From Trichoplax adhaerens (lineage: Eukaryota; Animalia; Placozoa), in the NCBI RefSeq assembly GCF_000150275.1, contig NW_002061024.1:8402-16007 (forward strand): a stretch of DNA of 7,606 nt, written 5' to 3'. The notes below the pieces were generated by a model. That model searched no databases. It was not told where the DNA came from and was given only the letters and a program-made list of their open reading frames with translations. The first letter of the stretch is position 1, and every line of letters begins with the position of its first letter. Below are positions 212 to 7,516 of the stretch, in pieces. A program made the position numbers and the translations under genes.

Positions 212-252
212 TCAGAGTCTTGTCGTGTTACGCTTGAGATACGCTATCATAT
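212..252 (-). CDS. Putative terminal exon of the death-domain gene
   Basis: T-rich acceptor tttttaatttactgTAG (255-253). Read in phase 1 it gives xMIAYLKRNTTRL then TGA (214-212). Confidence 0.35.
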
Positions 253-425
253 CTACAGTAAATTAAAAATAGTCCATGAAAATTCGTTTATCATAAATTG
301 TGTAAATAATGAGAAGAAAATCTTGATAAACACTTTCTGTTTATAGCATAAAAGCTTACCATCTTCTTTTACAGCATTAGCTTTCCTTTTTAAATTTTTA
401 CATGTAGAAACAACTTTACACATAC

Positions 426-671
426 GATGATCTTCAGCTACAGAGCGCAGCCCGCTTTTAAAGAGTGCTTCAACTAATGCTTTCTTTGTGTAACTCCGAC
501 CTTTTCTACGCTTATTAATACTCAACATTTGCGCACATTGATCGTCAACTGATCCAATTTTTTCAGCTATAATTTTATCGATGTCGCCTTCATCAATTCC
601 AAATTCTCTTGCCAAAGTTTTCCACTTTGTTCCAATATCTTTTACGATTTTGCCGTTATACTTCTTGGCTG
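426..671 (-). CDS. Exon encoding a death domain (FADD/TRADD/ankyrin DD-like)
   Basis: The frame of ORF 253-615 extends upstream: AKKYNGKIVKDIGTKWKTLAREFGIDEGDIDKIIAEKIGSVDDQCAQMLSINKRRKGRSYTKKALVEALFKSGLRSVAEDH. This matches the DD pattern (I/L)G.xW..LAR.LG.....ID.I...ML...L..AL...GL..VAE. It is bounded by acceptor ttattgTAG (674-672) and donor GTATGT (425-420), giving 246 nt in phase 1-1. An alternative phase-1 donor GTAAGC lies at 359-354. Confidence 0.8.
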
Positions 672-956
672 CTACAATAATTTTATTTTATTTGCAAAAA
701 TAGGATCAGCGGCTACTTGCGGTACATCATATTAAACAGTATAATAGAAAATCGAATGTAGCAAGAATGAACGATTCTCTCTATACTAAATATATTCCTC
801 TTTCTAAGTTGCAATTGTTGAAAGCGCTTGCTATTCAAACCAATTAAATGACTCTATCTTACAAATCAGGTAAGTCGCTGCTATTACAGTATGCGATAGA
901 TTTTACCGTATTATCACTTAAAATAGTAAAAGAATGTTAGCCGCAGTACAACTTAC

Positions 957-1073
957 AAGAATTGGGTTCGTCCATTTCTATCTCAACAGTTTCATTAGAA
1001 TCGACAGAGACTTTAAATCGAATTGTGGATGCACAACCAGCATTGAATTTCTCAGTTTCGTCTGATTCTTGTT
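957..1073 (-). CDS. Putative internal exon upstream of the death domain (acidic linker)
   Basis: Acceptor ctctAG (1075-1074) and consensus donor GTAAGT (956-951). It is 117 nt, phase 1-1 and open: QESDETEKFNAGCASTIRFKVSVDSNETVEIEMDEPNS. It is phase-compatible with the DD exon. Confidence 0.55.
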
Positions 1074-1307
1074 CTAGAGTTGAATCGACATTACAAAGAT
1101 ACAGTATCATCAGCCATTAAAGAAACAAAGTATAATCTCATTCGCTACTATGCATGCAAGCGCTCAACATTTTTATAAAGTATTATAACATCGTTAAACG
1201 TTAAAAGTATGTACTCTTTTGGCTTAAATAATTCTAATATAGTGTGATTTACTTAACTCAATGTTGTTACACTAACTGCAAGCTATTCTCTTTAAAAATA
1301 CAGAGTG

Positions 1308-2082
1308 NNNNNNNNNNNNNNNNNNNNNNNNNNNNNNNNNNNNNNNNNNNNNNNNNNNNNNNNNNNNNNNNNNNNNNNNNNNNNNNNNNNNNNNNNNNNN
1401 NNNNNNNNNNNNNNNNNNNNNNNNNNNNNNNNNNNNNNNNNNNNNNNNNNNNNNNNNNNNNNNNNNNNNNNNNNNNNNNNNNNNNNNNNNNNNNNNNNNN
1501 NNNNNNNNNNNNNNNNNNNNNNNNNNNNNNNNNNNNNNNNNNNNNNNNNNNNNNNNNNNNNNNNNNNNNNNNNNNNNNNNNNNNNNNNNNNNNNNNNNNN
1601 NNNNNNNNNNNNNNNNNNNNNNNNNNNNNNNNNNNNNNNNNNNNNNNNNNNNNNNNNNNNNNNNNNNNNNNNNNNNNNNNNNNNNNNNNNNNNNNNNNNN
1701 NNNNNNNNNNNNNNNNNNNNNNNNNNNNNNNNNNNNNNNNNNNNNNNNNNNNNNNNNNNNNNNNNNNNNNNNNNNNNNNNNNNNNNNNNNNNNNNNNNNN
1801 NNNNNNNNNNNNNNNNNNNNNNNNNNNNNNNNNNNNNNNNNNNNNNNNNNNNNNNNNNNNNNNNNNNNNNNNNNNNNNNNNNNNNNNNNNNNNNNNNNNN
1901 NNNNNNNNNNNNNNNNNNNNNNNNNNNNNNNNNNNNNNNNNNNNNNNNNNNNNNNNNNNNNNNNNNNNNNNNNNNNNNNNNNNNNNNNNNNNNNNNNNNN
2001 NNNNNNNNNNNNNNNNNNNNNNNNNNNNNNNNNNNNNNNNNNNNNNNNNNNNNNNNNNNNNNNNNNNNNNNNNNNNNNNNNN
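1308..2082. other. Assembly gap (775 N)
   Basis: Run of N. Confidence 1.
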
Positions 2083-2774
2083 AGTTTTGTATCGCGTAGA
2101 GTTTAGAATGTAAATTACGCGTAAAGGGACGTATCAGTCTCACAATTACCATTACGAATACTTGTATTTAAATAGTATAGTATTCAAGTATTTGGCAAAG
2201 TTGTTTTCTCAGAGCTCGTAGTTGAGCGTGAACGATTAGTAAATTGAATTTCTCTTCAGAGATTATAAGTCCTGCATAGCCAGGCAATAACTTAGGATTT
2301 ACGTGCATTGCGTTATTCTGAACTCGCGGTTATGGGCAGTTTAGAGAATAGAGAAATAAAGCATTACTATACTTAACCGAAGATTACCAAGTTGTTGTGA
2401 GTCAGTAGGTCGAATATATCAGCTATCCGACAGTCGGAGTACCTCGTGAGTTAATTCCAGCTCCATCTCATCACGATATACCAAACTGTAACAATATTAT
2501 AACTACTAGCACGAATACTCATACCACCTTAGAATCACTGTTTAAGTTATATTGGGGCTGTACTACACACTACTACTACAATAGGTTTGTCATTGAACGA
2601 TTTTCGCGATCTATTAGATCTTATTAGACTAATAGACCGACTTAGAATTGAACAGGGTTGAAACGCTTATACTTTAAGAAATACTTGGTGGACATGTTGT
2701 TTACCGACTGCAATACTTCAGTATGGTGTCGTAGTGTGCTGTTAGTGCTGTAATTATAATGAAAAGCAGAATAC

Positions 2775-5240
2775 CTAAAGCAAATATCTAATCAAACACC
2801 TTACAAAACGCTCAATGGTACCTGCTAACTCATCTTCCTCTTCTTGCTTCTCGTGTTTCTCTTGCTTTTCTTGCTTCTCTTTCTCCTCTAGCTCCTCTTG
2901 ATGCCTTTTTTCCCCTTGCTCTTCTTGCTTCTCTTGCTTTTCTCGCTTCTCTTGCTCCTCTAGCTCCTTTTGCTTCTCTTTTTCCTCTTGCTCCTTTTTT
3001 TCCCCTTGCTTCTCTTGCTTCTCCTCTTGCTCTTCTTGCTCCTCATGCTCCTCTTGTTTCTCCTCTTGCTTTTCTTGCTTCTCTTGTTCCTCTTGTTTCT
3101 CTTGTTTCTCTTTGAGTGATTTCTCATTCGTAGAAATAGCTTCTTCATGCTTGCCTTCAGCAAAATATACATTTCCTAGACCGCTATACGACTCTGCCAC
3201 ATCAGGATGATTGCTACCCAAAACTGATAATTGAATCTTAAGGGATTGCTTATACATAGAAATAGCTTCTTCATGCTTGCCTTCAGCAAAATATACATTT
3301 CCTAGACCGCTATACGACTCTGCCATATCAGGATGATTGCTACCCAAAACTGATAATTGAATCTTAAGGGATTGCTCATACATGGAAATAGCTTCTTTAT
3401 GCTTGCTTTGATTACTATAGACACGACCAATGTTGCTATATGTTATAGCAATACTTGGATGATTGTCGCCAAGTTGTCTCAGTTTAATCTTGAGTGACTT
3501 GTTATACATTGATAGAGCGTCATCATACTTGCCTTGACGATTATAGACAGTTGCAATATTGCTATATGTTGTAGCAATACTTGGATAATTGTCGCCAAGT
3601 TGTGTTAGATTAATCTTGAGTGATTTGTTATACATTGATAGAGCGTCATCATACTTGCCTTGATCATCATAGACACTTGCAATGTTGTTATATGTATTAG
3701 CAATACTTGGATGATTGTCGCCAAGTTGTGTTTGTCGAATCTTGAGAGACTTGTTATACATTGATAGAGCGTCATCATACTTGCCTTGATCGCTATAGAC
3801 ATTTCCAATGTTGTTATATGTATTAGCAATACTTGGATGATTGTCGCCAAGTTTTGTTAGATTAATGTTGAGTGACTTATTATGCATTGATAGAGCGTCA
3901 TCATACTTGCCTTGATCGCTATAGACATTTCCAATGTTGTTATATGTATTAGCAATACTTGGATGATTGTCGCCAAGTTTTGTTAGATTAATCTTGAGTG
4001 ATTTGTTATACATTGATAGAGCGTCATCATACTTGCCTTGATCTTTATAGACACTTGCAATGTTGTGATATGTTGTAGCAATACTTGGATGATTGTCGCC
4101 AAGTTGTGTCAGTTTAATCTTGAGTGACTTGTTATACATTGATAGAGCGTCATCATACTTGCCTTGATCATCATAGACACTTGCAATATTGCTATATGTT
4201 GTAGCAATACTTGGATGATTGTCGCCAAGTTGTCTCAGTTTAATCTTGAGTGACTTGTTATACATTGATAGAGCGTCATCATACTTGCCTTGACGATTAT
4301 AGACAGTTGCAATATTGCTATATGTTGTAGCAATACTTGGATAATTGTCGCCAAGTTGTGTTAGATTAATCTTGAGTGATTTGTTATACATTGATAGAGC
4401 GTCATCATACTTGCCTTGATCATCATAGACACTTGCAATGTTGTTATATGTATTAGCAATACTTGGATGATTGTCGCCAAGTTGTGTTTGTCGAATCTTG
4501 AGAGACTTGTTATACATTGATAGAGCGTCATCATACTTGCCTTGATCGCTATAGACATTTCCAATGTTGTTATATGTATTAGCAATACTTGGATGATTGT
4601 CGCCAAGTTTTGTTAGATTAATGTTGAGTGACTTATTATGCATTGATAGAGCGTCATCATACTTGCCTTGATCGCTATAGACATTTCCAATGTTGTTATA
4701 TGTATTAGCAATACTTGGATGATTGTCGCCAAGTTTTGTTAGATTAATCTTGAGTGATTTGTTATACATTGATAGAGCGTCATCATACTTGCCTTGATCT
4801 TTATAGACACTTGCAATGTTGTGATATGTTGTAGCAATACTTGGATGATTGTCGCCAAGTTGTGTCAGTTTAATCTTGAGTGACTTGTTATACATTGATA
4901 GAGCGTCATCATACTTGCCTTGATCATCATAGACACTTGCAATATTGCTATATGTTGTAGCAATACTTGGATGATTGTCGCCAAGTTGTCTCAGTTTAAT
5001 CTTGAGTGACTTGTTATACATTGATAGAGCGTCATCATACTTGCCTTGACGATTATAGACAGTTGCAATATTGCTATATGTTGTAGCAATACTTGGATAA
5101 TTGTCGCCAAGTTGTGTTAGATTAATCTTGAGTGATTTGTTATACATTGATAGAGCGTCATCATACTTGCCTTGATCATCATAGACACTTGCAATGTTGT
5201 TATATGTATTAGCAATACTTGGATGATTGTCGCCAAGTGT
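2775..5240 (-). CDS. 42-residue TPR-repeat protein, copy B (5'-partial, runs into the gap): at least 14 core repeats, 3 C-cap repeats, E/K/Q-rich tail
   Basis: The tracked ORF 2775-5147 stays open upstream to the gap (LGDNHPSIANTY... starts at 5237), so Met at 5147 is internal to a repeat. The C-terminus EEEDELAGTIERFVRCLIRYLL is the same as in copy A. Confidence 0.88.
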   Translation of the reverse strand, partial: TLGDNHPSIANTYNNIASVYDDQGKYDDALSMYNKSLKINLTQLGDNYPSIATTYSNIATVYNRQGKYDDALSMYNKSLKIKLRQLGDNHPSIATTYSNIASVYDDQGKYDDALSMYNKSLKIKLTQLGDNHPSIATTYHNIASVYKDQGKYDDALSMYNKSLKINLTKLGDNHPSIANTYNNIGNVYSDQGKYDDALSMHNKSLNINLTKLGDNHPSIANTYNNIGNVYSDQGKYDDALSMYNKSLKIRQTQLGDNHPSIANTYNNIASVYDDQGKYDDALSMYNKSLKINLTQLGDNYPSIATTYSNIATVYNRQGKYDDALSMYNKSLKIKLRQLGDNHPSIATTYSNIASVYDDQGKYDDALSMYNKSLKIKLTQLGDNHPSIATTYHNIASVYKDQGKYDDALSMYNKSLKINLTKLGDNHPSIANTYNNIGNVYSDQGKYDDALSMHNKSLNINLTKLGDNHPSIANTYNNIGNVYSDQGKYDDALSMYNKSLKIRQTQLGDNHPSIANTYNNIASVYDDQGKYDDALSMYNKSLKINLTQLGDNYPSIATTYSNIATVYNRQGKYDDALSMYNKSLKIKLRQLGDNHPSIAITYSNIGRVYSNQSKHKEAISMYEQSLKIQLSVLGSNHPDMAESYSGLGNVYFAEGKHEEAISMYKQSLKIQLSVLGSNHPDVAESYSGLGNVYFAEGKHEEAISTNEKSLKEKQEKQEEQEKQEKQEEKQEEHEEQEEQEEKQEKQGEKKEQEEKEKQKELEEQEKREKQEKQEEQGEKRHQEELEEKEKQEKQEKHEKQEEEDELAGTIERFVRCLIRYLL
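2833..3112 (-). repeat. Low-complexity purine-rich coding repeat (about 9-nt CAAGAGAAG-like units) encoding the E/K/Q tail of copy B
   Basis: The + strand is a ctcttgctt-like pyrimidine tract. It translates as KEKQEKQEEQEKQEKQEEKQ... Confidence 0.9.
3474..5237. repeat. Coding tandem array: 14 x 126-bp units forming a 756-bp six-unit higher-order repeat, (abcdef)x2 + ab
   Basis: The unit order in the translation recurs every 252 aa. Shadow ORFs 3605-3850 and 4361-4606 are identical and exactly 756 bp apart. Confidence 0.95.
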
Positions 5241-5241
5241 G

Positions 5242-5291
5242 NNNNNNNNNNNNNNNNNNNNNNNNNNNNNNNNNNNNNNNNNNNNNNNNNN
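5242..5291. other. Assembly gap (50 N, probably a placeholder size)
   Basis: Exactly 50 N. The bases flanking it on both sides deviate from their repeat copies by small indels or substitutions, as expected at low-quality contig ends. Confidence 0.98.
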
Positions 5292-5297
5292 TCATGC

Positions 5298-5530
5298 TTA
5301 AGTTATATTGGGGCTGTACTATACACTACTATTACAATAGGTTTGTCATTGAACGATTTTCGCGATCTATTCGATCTTATTAGACTAATAGACCGACTTA
5401 GAATTGAACAGGGTTGAAACGCCTATACTTTAAGAAATACTTGGTGGACATGTTGTTTACCGACTGCAATACTTCAGTATGGTGTCGTAGTGTGCTGTTA
5501 GTGCTGTAATTATAATGAAAAGCAGAATAC
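5298..5530. repeat. Second copy of the 3' flank 2542-2774 (offset 2756)
   Basis: By-eye alignment gives about 4 substitutions in about 233 bp with no indels. Homology runs up to the 50-N gap. Confidence 0.92.
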
Positions 5531-7516
5531 CTAAAGCAAATATCTAATCAAACACCTTACAAAGCGCTCAATGGTACCTGCTAACTCATCTTCCTCTTCT
5601 TGCTTCTCGTGTTTCTCTTGCTTTTCTTGCTTCTCTTTCTCTTCTAGCTCCTCTTGATGCCTTTTTTCCCCTTGCTCTTCTTGCTTCTCTTGCTTCTCTT
5701 GTTTCTTCTCTTGCTTTTCTCGCTTCTCTTGCTCCTCTAGCTCCTTTTGCTTCTCTTTTTCCTCTTGCTCCCTATTTTCCCCTTGTTTCTCTTGCTTCTC
5801 CTCTTGCTCTTCTTGCTTCTCATGCTCCTCTTGTTTCTCCTCTTGCTTTTCTTGCTTCTCTTGTTCCTCTTGTTTCTCTTTGAGTGATTTCTCATTCGTA
5901 GAAATAGCTTCTTCACGCTTACCTTCAGCTTGATAGACATTTCTTAGATTGTTATATGACTTTGCGACATCAGGATGGTTGTGACCCAAAACTGATAATA
6001 GAATGTTATAGGATTGCTCGTACATAGAAATAGCTTCTTCATGCTTGCCTTCAGCAAGATATACATTTCCTAGACCGCTATACGACTTTGCCACATCAGG
6101 ATGATTGCGACCCAAAACTGATAATTGAATCTTAAGGGATTGCTTATACATAGAAATAGCTTCTTTATGCTTGCTTTGATTACTATAGACACGACCAATG
6201 TTGCTATATGTTATAGCAATACTTGGATGATTGTCGCCAAGTTGTCTCAGATTAATGTTGAGTGACTTGTTATACATTGATAGAGCGTCATCATACTTGC
6301 CTTGATGATAATAGACACTTGCAATGTTGTTATATGTTACAGCAATACTTGGATGATTGTCGCCAAGTTGTGTTTGTGTAATCTTGAGTGACTTGTTATA
6401 CATTGATAGAGCGTCATCATACTTGCCTTGACGATTATAGACACTTGCAATGTTGTGATATGTATCAGCAATACTTGGATGATTGTCGCCAAGTTGTGTT
6501 AGGTTAATCTTGAGTGACTTGTTATACATTGATAGAGCGTCATCATACTTGCCTTGATTATGATAGACATTTGCAATGTTGTTATATGTATCAGCAATAC
6601 TCGGATGATTGTCGCCAAGTTGTGTCAGATTAATGTTGAGTGACTTGTTATACATTGATAGAGCGTCATCATACTTGCCTTGATGATTATAGACATTTGC
6701 AATGTTGTTATATGTATCAGCAATACTTGGATGATTGTCGCCAAGTTGTGTCAGTTTAATCTTGAGTGACTTGTTATACATTGATAGAGCGTCATCATAC
6801 TTGCCTTGATTATCATAGACAAGACCAATGTTGTTATATGTTGTAGCAATACTTGGATGATTGTCGCCAAGTTGTGTTAGGTTAATCTTGAGTGACTTGT
6901 TATGCATTGATAGAGCGTCATCATACTTGCCTAGGTCTTGATAGACTTGTCCAATGCTGTCATATAATACAGCAATACTTGGATCATTATTTTCAAGAAT
7001 TTTCAGTTTAATCCTTAATGATTTATTGTATTCTTTTAATGCCTCGTCATGCTTGCCTTGATTGTGGTAGACCAAGCCGACCTTCTGATAGGACTTACAG
7101 ACATCAAGATGTTCACTCCCTAACGATTTTAATTTTATTTGAAGTGATTTGTTGTAATCACTCAAAGCACCCATAAAATCACTTTGAAGTCGTTTACAGT
7201 CGCCCTGGATATCGAAACAATAAGAAATCTTGACCTCTTCTAGTTTCTTAGCTAACTTTTCTGCTTTTCCACTGTATTCATTGGCTTCTATCAATTGATA
7301 TTTTTCCAGGTAAGATTGAGCCATAGCGAGATAAATAGAATATTCAAGTTGACGACGACAATCACTACTCTCCGCTATCGATTTGATTTGAGTTACAGCT
7401 TTTTGAAAATAAAATAATGCGTCTTCATAATTGCCTTCGCCATGATATTTCACGCCCTTTTTGCGTATAGATTCAATCTCGTCAAATATCGTAGAATTGC
7501 TAGTTCGATTGCCCAT
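5531..7516 (-). CDS. 42-residue TPR-repeat protein (kinesin-light-chain/nephrocystin-3-type repeats), copy A: MG-x3-S start, divergent N-cap TPRs, 5 near-identical core repeats, 3 C-cap repeats, E/K/Q-rich tail
   Basis: 661-aa ORF. An in-frame TAA at 7522-7520 lies just upstream of the ATG and there is an A at -3, which fixes the start. The repeat LGDNHPSIAxTYxNIxxVYxxQGKYDDALSMYNKSLxIxLxQ fits the TPR consensus (Y4, I7, G/A8, Y11, G15, Y17, A20, Y24). The true 3' end may be spliced at the CAG|GTACCA donor at 5577. Confidence 0.9.
   Translation of the reverse strand: MGNRTSNSTIFDEIESIRKKGVKYHGEGNYEDALFYFQKAVTQIKSIAESSDCRRQLEYSIYLAMAQSYLEKYQLIEANEYSGKAEKLAKKLEEVKISYCFDIQGDCKRLQSDFMGALSDYNKSLQIKLKSLGSEHLDVCKSYQKVGLVYHNQGKHDEALKEYNKSLRIKLKILENNDPSIAVLYDSIGQVYQDLGKYDDALSMHNKSLKINLTQLGDNHPSIATTYNNIGLVYDNQGKYDDALSMYNKSLKIKLTQLGDNHPSIADTYNNIANVYNHQGKYDDALSMYNKSLNINLTQLGDNHPSIADTYNNIANVYHNQGKYDDALSMYNKSLKINLTQLGDNHPSIADTYHNIASVYNRQGKYDDALSMYNKSLKITQTQLGDNHPSIAVTYNNIASVYYHQGKYDDALSMYNKSLNINLRQLGDNHPSIAITYSNIGRVYSNQSKHKEAISMYKQSLKIQLSVLGRNHPDVAKSYSGLGNVYLAEGKHEEAISMYEQSYNILLSVLGHNHPDVAKSYNNLRNVYQAEGKREEAISTNEKSLKEKQEEQEKQEKQEEKQEEHEKQEEQEEKQEKQGENREQEEKEKQKELEEQEKREKQEKKQEKQEKQEEQGEKRHQEELEEKEKQEKQEKHEKQEEEDELAGTIERFVRCLIRYLL
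5589..5881 (-). repeat. Low-complexity coding repeat encoding the E/K/Q tail of copy A
   Basis: Same pattern as copy B, differing by in-frame indels and a few substitutions. Confidence 0.9.
6242..6871. repeat. Coding tandem array: 5 x 126-bp core units of copy A, flanked by diverged units (about 5864-6241 and 6872-7123)
   Basis: ggatgattgtcgccaagttg and cattgatagagcgtcatcatacttgcct recur at a 126-bp period. Confidence 0.95.

Follow-up and report, generated by a model that had tools for sequence, protein, structure and literature searches.

A TPR array and a downstream death domain in Trichoplax adhaerens as candidate parts of one spliced gene without an NTPase switch

Do the two tetratricopeptide repeat (TPR) arrays and the small set of death-domain (DD) exons that share a strand in a region of the Trichoplax adhaerens genome belong to one gene? 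The region is a 7,606-nucleotide stretch of contig NW_002061024.1 (positions 8,402 to 16,007 of the forward strand, assembly GCF_000150275.1), hereafter called the window, which is AT-rich and consists of three contigs joined by runs of N. A first-pass annotation had placed the TPR open reading frames (ORFs) and the DD exons on one strand with the DD downstream, which was confirmed by the ORFs and by Pfam matches, the strand being the minus strand. We compared the window with paralogous contigs, each of which belongs either to the T. adhaerens assembly GCA_000150275.1 or to Trichoplax sp. H2 (L006 is an H2 contig). The reading we favour, with a probability of roughly 55%, is that the locus encodes a spliced, GTPase-less TPR-stalk-DD gene, which would be a switch-less variant of the placozoan expansion of TPR, Roco and NB-ARC genes with death folds. 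The features concerned are listed in the order of the minus strand; a slash marks an exon–intron border, and E/K/Q stands for the amino acids that dominate the tail of the arrays.

5531 to 7516, minus strand: TPR gene copy A, an intact ORF of 661 residues with an MGNRTS start, an N-terminal TPR-like region, 42-residue KLC-type TPR units and an E/K/Q tail
5579 to 5896, minus strand: E/K/Q tail of copy A, 106 residues, imperfect 9-nucleotide repeat
5575 to 5584, minus strand: candidate phase-1 donor of copy A, TTAGCAG/GTA, with its GT at 5577-5576
5292 to 5530, minus strand: 3' flank of copy A, 98% identical to the copy B flank, without AATAAA or ATTAAA
5242 to 5291, no strand: assembly gap of 50 N, with the copy A flank on one side and the middle of the copy B array on the other
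2775 to 5241, minus strand: TPR gene copy B, its 5' end cut by the gap, with 821 open codons that contain 16 regular TPR units and, after them, an E/K/Q tail; it ends as copy A does
3446 to 5238, minus strand: exact 756-nucleotide unit (six TPRs), present 2.37 times at 100% identity
2819 to 2828, minus strand: candidate phase-1 donor of copy B, TTAGCAG/GTA, with its GT at 2821-2820; the same 10-mer ends the body exon of the paralog P0075
2116 to 2818, minus strand: TPR 3' flank or start of a putative intron, without a canonical poly(A) hexamer
1074 to 2115, minus strand: 5' part of a duplicated DD unit, including a gap of 775 N, without a credible ORF; elsewhere this part follows different upstream DNA
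957 to 1073, minus strand: exon 2 (linker, phase 1-1), acceptor AG at 1075-1074, donor GT at 956-955
672 to 956, minus strand: intron 2; a diverged form of its 3' 155 nucleotides, continuing into the beginning of the DD exon, is found again in contig L004 after the P0075 body exon
360 to 671, minus strand: death-domain exon, phase 1-1, donor GT at 359-358 (GTAAGC)
212 to 252, minus strand: terminal mini-exon of 13 codons, stop at 214-212, with ATTAAA at 205-200, seven bases past the stop

The evidence that carries the spliced reading lies at the end of the TPR exon. No GT occurs anywhere in the E/K/Q tail, and the first good one is that of CAG/GTACCA, in phase 1, in both copies, exactly where the first-pass annotation had put a donor. 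At this point the TPR tail reads ..EDELA + G. The 10-mer TTAGCAG/GTA is found four times in 185 kb, against 0.18 occurrences expected, and one of these is the phase-1 end (..EEELA + G) of the 783-residue body exon of P0075 (L004 20635-20644), an NB-ARC-APAF1_C-Roc-COR gene. About 970 nucleotides past the P0075 donor there is a diverged copy of intron 2 of the window and of the first 45 nucleotides of the DD exon: L004 21456-21656 aligns with window 827-627 at 74% identity over 211 nucleotides (E 5e-34) and keeps a phase-compatible acceptor, with the exon decayed thereafter. Because the P0075 donor is followed by a DD copy, the succession of ELA-G donor and this DD exon is an inherited module that predates the arrangement in the window. 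A second Roco gene, in L001, likewise has an acidic stretch and then a phase-1 donor where its body exon ends ahead of the DD, so phase 1 is the rule of the family and permits such swaps; every death-fold exon studied is in phase 1. Judged from these comparisons, the ancestral arrangement is a body exon joined directly to the DD exon, and the TPR genes look like a Roco/NB-ARC-type gene from which the NTPase part has gone while the last codons, the donor and the DD tail were kept.

Two further observations were made at P0075. The annotated gene (TRIADDRAFT NB-ARC-Roc-COR, L004 20635-21700) ends in a 20-codon "last exon" that lies within the sequence homologous to intron 2, with a truncated DD remnant directly after it; probably this 3' end is mis-annotated and the DD tail of the gene has been lost. 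Pieces of the upstream part of the DD unit also lie behind P0075 in L004, but they are weak evidence since the segment is a dispersed repeat.

In the gene that we propose, a large single exon would encode an N-terminal TPR region, hypervariable, near-identical 42-residue TPR units and an E/K/Q tail of about 105 residues, and would end in ..ELA + G/GT in phase 1. This exon would be spliced over about 2.3-2.7 kb to the phase-1 DD exon, with exon 2 as an optional exon, and then to the 13-codon terminal exon. The direct join had been predicted to be in frame, and it is (..DELA-E-QESDE..), the routes with and without exon 2 being equally in frame. Two observations on related genes lend support: introns of 1-3.5 kb are usual in their models, and in P0073, an RNA-guided H2 model, the DD exon is internal, behind a TIR exon. 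The product would place a death domain at the C-terminus of a charged stalk that bears a TPR sensor. Clustered by their ligands, the TPR arrays would, by analogy, nucleate a helical DD assembly that recruits other DD proteins; a function as an immune receptor is conjecture. The sensor-stalk-DD receptor of the first-pass annotation thus survives in its parts, strand and phase, to which the junction of the Roco paralog is added, and fails at one exon border.

That border is the 3' end of the DD exon. The exons had been drawn at 1073-957 and 671-426, both in phase 1-1; the first of them, the start at 671 and the phase stand, whereas the end at 426, with its donor GTATGT, is wrong, as the frame in three JGI models and in the H2 model continues to ..AVKED before splicing at the 359-358 donor, which gives 671-360. 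The identity of the domain is clear. Pfam Death (PF00531) matches window 669-427 with 47.3 bits (cut-off 22.6, E 2.3e-12) over positions 9-80 of the 86 in the profile, the nearest solved chains are the death domains of Fas and FADD (E 0.0045) and of PIDD (E 0.017), and the exon is 78-97% identical to three annotated T. adhaerens proteins. Exon 2 is the weakest part of the spliced model, and its coding status is uncertain. It carries an in-frame deletion of 42 nucleotides in L002 and L003, almost all differences between its copies are non-synonymous, and neither Roco C-termini nor the terminal exon in L004 resembles it significantly. Just upstream of its acceptor lies an in-frame ATG (1110-1108), conserved in four copies. 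Two ATGs overlap there (window 1107-1117), of which ATG 1110 is in frame with the DD and ATG 1117, 7 nucleotides further upstream, is out of frame, stands in the better context and runs into a stop after 8 codons; such a pair is awkward for a real start codon.

The DD exon set exists in at least seven copies of 93-98% identity, and window 1307-1 recurs at 93-98% in L001, L002, L003, L004, L005 and L006. Its contexts differ: the DD exon stands behind the TIR exon in P0073, at the head of the JGI models P0075 and P0074 (the latter a protein of 471 residues), and in partial tandem arrays. The duplicated unit begins near window 2116; upstream of it lies the TPR flank in the window and in L002, where the junction between flank and unit is the same, and other DNA in L003, L004 and L001. 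In L005 and L006 the shared part begins only at about window 945, so that there the module is the DD exon with its flanking introns. On these comparisons the DD exon set is a shuffled multi-copy module. The exon diverges two to four times faster than the flanking introns and the 3' untranslated region (window versus L003, L004, L005 and L006); between L003 and L005 it differs at 29 of 312 positions, versus 13 of 591 in the introns (Fisher p 3.5e-6). In many pairs of paralogs the ratio of non-synonymous to synonymous differences (pN/pS) in the DD exon exceeds 1, and L003 and L006 are separated by 20 non-synonymous and 0 synonymous changes. This pattern points to selection on the domain rather than decay and looks like diversifying selection on the DD surface.

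Several copies are damaged. The scaffold_1 copy (P0002, TRIADDRAFT_52769; L001 10400-10700) has a frameshifting deletion of 41 nucleotides before the last helix and is probably a pseudogene, and one DD unit in L004 is truncated; we saw no intact DD copy that provably lacks an upstream body exon. Tandem DD units without TPRs were considered as strong evidence for separate genes and were down-weighted, none of them being both complete and intact. In H2 (L006 914-5696) the gene in which the DD exon is modelled as internal, a TIR-DD gene, is extended by another DD-like segment with a hydrophobic C-terminus, for which the coding sequence lies about 570 nucleotides downstream. The equivalent of this DD-like plus TM exon would lie about 200 nucleotides past the end of the window; in L001 the exon follows 2 kb further on. 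L002 has, on the strand of its DD cassette and about 6 kb downstream of it, beyond a 2.4-kb gap, an ORF (L002 8177-9157) with a GTPase-type P-loop (GPPNVGKS) followed by degenerate TPR_12-like units that are interrupted by stops.

At the other end of the proposed gene, both TPR copies match overwhelmingly TPR_12 and TPR_10 with a strict periodicity of 42 residues, as KLC-type TPRs do (TPR_12: copy A 488 bits, E 7e-150; copy B 639 bits, E 4e-197; cut-off 30.1). Copy A has an in-frame stop five codons upstream of its ATG and ends 16 codons past the candidate donor; the open frame of copy B begins at the edge of the gap (5240) and runs to the stop at 2775. The TPR units are 85-100% identical at the DNA level and differ by about 10% between the two copies. 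Among the 11 distinct regular 42-residue units, only positions 8, 21, 24, 28, 31 and 32 vary. The term "hypervariable", used in the first-pass annotation, therefore fits these few positions and does not extend to selection on the units, for which the overall pN/pS of 0.76 is no demonstration of positive selection. The tails, of 102-106 residues, consist of 42% E, 23% K and 20% Q and are encoded by a degenerate 9-nucleotide repeat; tails and 3' flanks of the two copies are 98% identical, with tail indels of 9 and 21 nucleotides. The tail probably forms a single long helix, and its role as a helical stalk is conjectural. The start MGNRTS fits the myristoylation motif, which calls for Gly2, for Ser/Thr at position 6 and for a third residue that is small or uncharged; since the N-terminus of copy B is lost in the 50-N gap, the motif can be read in copy A alone, and a myristoyl anchor is a conjecture drawn from it. 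When the TPR N-terminus and the C-terminal TPRs plus tail were used as protein queries in a restricted range of lengths, they returned generic bacterial and metagenomic TPR proteins only; no placozoan relatives appeared within that range, a result that the length restriction makes uninformative.

The arrays also bear marks of assembly. Every base of window 5238-4202 is matched by the one 756 nucleotides downstream; neighbouring 126-nucleotide units differ by about 10%, yet the block of six TPRs repeats without a mismatch. The exact repeat was produced either by the assembly or by a very recent duplication through unequal crossover, and because of it neither the length of the copy B array nor its number of units can be trusted. 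The two sides of the 50-N gap are not continuous sequence, copy B lacks at least its 5' end, and only scaffolding places copies A and B in tandem.

The second gap, of 775 N at 1308-2082, lies inside the putative intron, where an independent start of the DD gene had been suspected. L002 is colinear across it (L002 1-100 corresponds to window 2182-2083, L002 1396-1633 to window 1307-1071) and gives a true length of about 1295 nucleotides, or about 1.3 kb; L001 agrees. The roughly 1295 nucleotides of L002 that cover the gap contain no credible ORF, and judging by this paralog the gap hides neither an NTPase exon nor an obvious separate first exon. The related claim that no NACHT or NB-ARC domain is visible was borne out, and Roc is not visible either, with no such Pfam match in the window and no credible ORF in the gap-spanning sequence. 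Part of the DNA under the gap is a dispersed repeat (L002 1023-1384; L004 22180-22540, 24711-25020 and 25519-25638), which recurs several times, at varying divergence, in introns and spacers of the gene cluster.

The strongest alternative to a spliced gene is that the locus holds two: TPR-only proteins that end at their own stop (..AGTIERFVRCLIRYLL) and an independent small DD gene, with a promoter in the approximately 1.5 kb carried with the unit, a start at ATG 1110 or at the Met in ..EIEMDEP.., and a DD-only adaptor of about 140 residues as its product. We leaned towards two genes initially, because of the TPR-less copies of the unit, the in-frame ATG 1110, the separate stop of the TPR ORF and the weak donor; we came to favour one spliced gene because of the 10-mer at the P0075 junction, the DD copy behind the P0075 donor and the phase-1 donor of the Roco gene in L001. 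The points that led to the first view still weigh against a single gene. The donor GTACCA is weak on its intron side, the other donors here being all of the GTAAG, GTATG or GTAAT type, and the TPR ORF has a stop of its own only 16 codons beyond it. The unit from about 2116 has been copied alone, partly in tandem, behind unrelated DNA in L001, L003 and L004, and it brings a stop and an ATTAAA of its own. Stand-alone DD proteins are what the JGI models P0001-P0003 describe, and such models use ATG 1110, the in-frame ATG kept in four copies. The junction itself matches between the TPR exon and P0075 at only 17 of 19 nucleotides, six of which are generic splice consensus. Finally, no DD set precedes copy B behind copy A, the scaffold joins are unreliable, and the copy A ORF matches no record in any assembly.

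Against two genes it can be said that the JGI models are ab initio predictions, that ATG 1110 is overlapped by the out-of-frame ATG 7 nucleotides upstream, and that the only copy shown to be without a nearby upstream TPR exon, in L001 (none within 9.9 kb), is frameshifted. There is also no poly(A) hexamer past the TPR stop: the 692-nucleotide TPR flank contains neither AATAAA nor ATTAAA, whereas seven of the eight annotated gene ends in the compared loci have one within 200 nucleotides, although the missing hexamer is only a weak hint, 1.5 being expected by composition. The ELA-G/GTA junction also occurs in a Roco-type gene, with the same DD exon behind it. With both sides taken into account, we regard two separate genes as unlikely, and one spliced gene as the favoured reading.

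A decayed or mis-assembled locus, in which A and B would be alleles or collapsed paralogs, the DD unit an orphan duplicate and a functional TPR-DD transcript absent, appears improbable to us. The three contigs joined by N runs speak for it, as do the missing 5' end of copy B, which cannot fit into 50 N, the exact 756-nucleotide unit repeated 2.4 times, the small or gap-rich scaffolds on which all the related DD copies lie, and the visible decay of neighbouring DD copies. However, the TPR ORFs are intact over 661 and 821 codons with tail indels in multiples of three, the window's DD exons are undamaged as well, a pN/pS above 1 and a rate of change higher than in the introns speak for selection on the DD exon and not for decay, and L002 independently has the same flank-to-unit junction.

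Still more remote, to the point of being very improbable, is a set of alternative variable first exons of the protocadherin or UGT1A kind, in which tandem TPR exons with their own starts and ELA-G donors would be spliced in turn to the shared DD set and a basal animal would, if it were true, gain a repertoire of switch-less TPR-DD receptors from one locus: it would suit the identical donors, the 98% identical tails and flanks, the TPR units that differ by about 10% and the single DD set downstream, but the tandem order depends on the doubtful 50-N join, the start of copy B is unseen and the example is single.

Returning to the spliced TPR-stalk-DD gene, we compared its architecture with known systems. 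The placozoan ROCO expansion (Civiero et al. 2014, PMC4104024) comprises at least 17 T. adhaerens genes that combine Roc-COR with TPR, LRR, CARD, death and AAA domains. The locus has in common with it the KLC-type TPR arrays, the death-fold tail exons and, through P0075, the phase-1 ELA-G/GTA junction and the type of DD exon. It differs in that Roc and COR are absent, as judged from the window and the gap-spanning paralog sequence, and in that the TPR array is followed directly by the charged tail; neither a Roc nor a COR match was found in the window, whereas P0075 has both and has in common with the locus only the junction at the exon end and the DD exon. Placozoan NLR-like genes are built as DD/CARD - NB-ARC - TPR/WD40 (Kamm et al. 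2019, PMC6321704). These also combine TPRs with a death fold, and a DD exon that is 82% identical heads the JGI model of an NB-ARC gene. In the locus studied here, however, NB-ARC and NACHT are missing and the order is reversed, with the TPRs N-terminal and the DD C-terminal. Placement among NLR or STAND proteins is not supported, since no NTPase family was matched in the TPR ORFs or the DD exons and the gap-spanning paralog holds no credible ORF; this negative covers the DNA as far as window position 1. The JGI locus tags of the related models were not found in the literature searched.

Two systems from outside the placozoans share part of this architecture. PIDD1 (LRDD) is organized as LRR - ZU5 - UPA - death domain, and like the proposed protein it couples a repeat sensor to a C-terminal DD without an NTPase switch; the PIDD death domain was also among the nearest solved ones. 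The repeats are TPR instead of LRR, the DD similarity is weak and generic, with Fas and FADD scoring equally, and no ZU5 or UPA match of Pfam lies in the window. Fungal NLRs carry repeat domains with high internal conservation, made of hypervariable TPR, ANK or WD40 units. The window likewise has near-identical units, variation at few positions and signs of recent unit duplication, but it contains an animal gene without a NOD domain, in which pN/pS is 0.76.

Classical LRR-type NLRs are absent from placozoans, as are many canonical pathways of innate immunity (Kamm et al. 2019, PMC6321704); these animals have instead expanded genes with TPR, NB-ARC, Roc-COR and death-fold domains. If the favoured reading is true, a TPR array wired to a death domain minus the NTPase switch would be a case of receptor simplification and rebuilding by exon shuffling, in which the old junction can still be read. 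The fast evolution of the DD exon is the signature expected in host-microbe or self/non-self conflict, and the locus and its paralogs offer a set of receptor and adaptor gene candidates, concrete enough to be tested, in an animal that is among the simplest.

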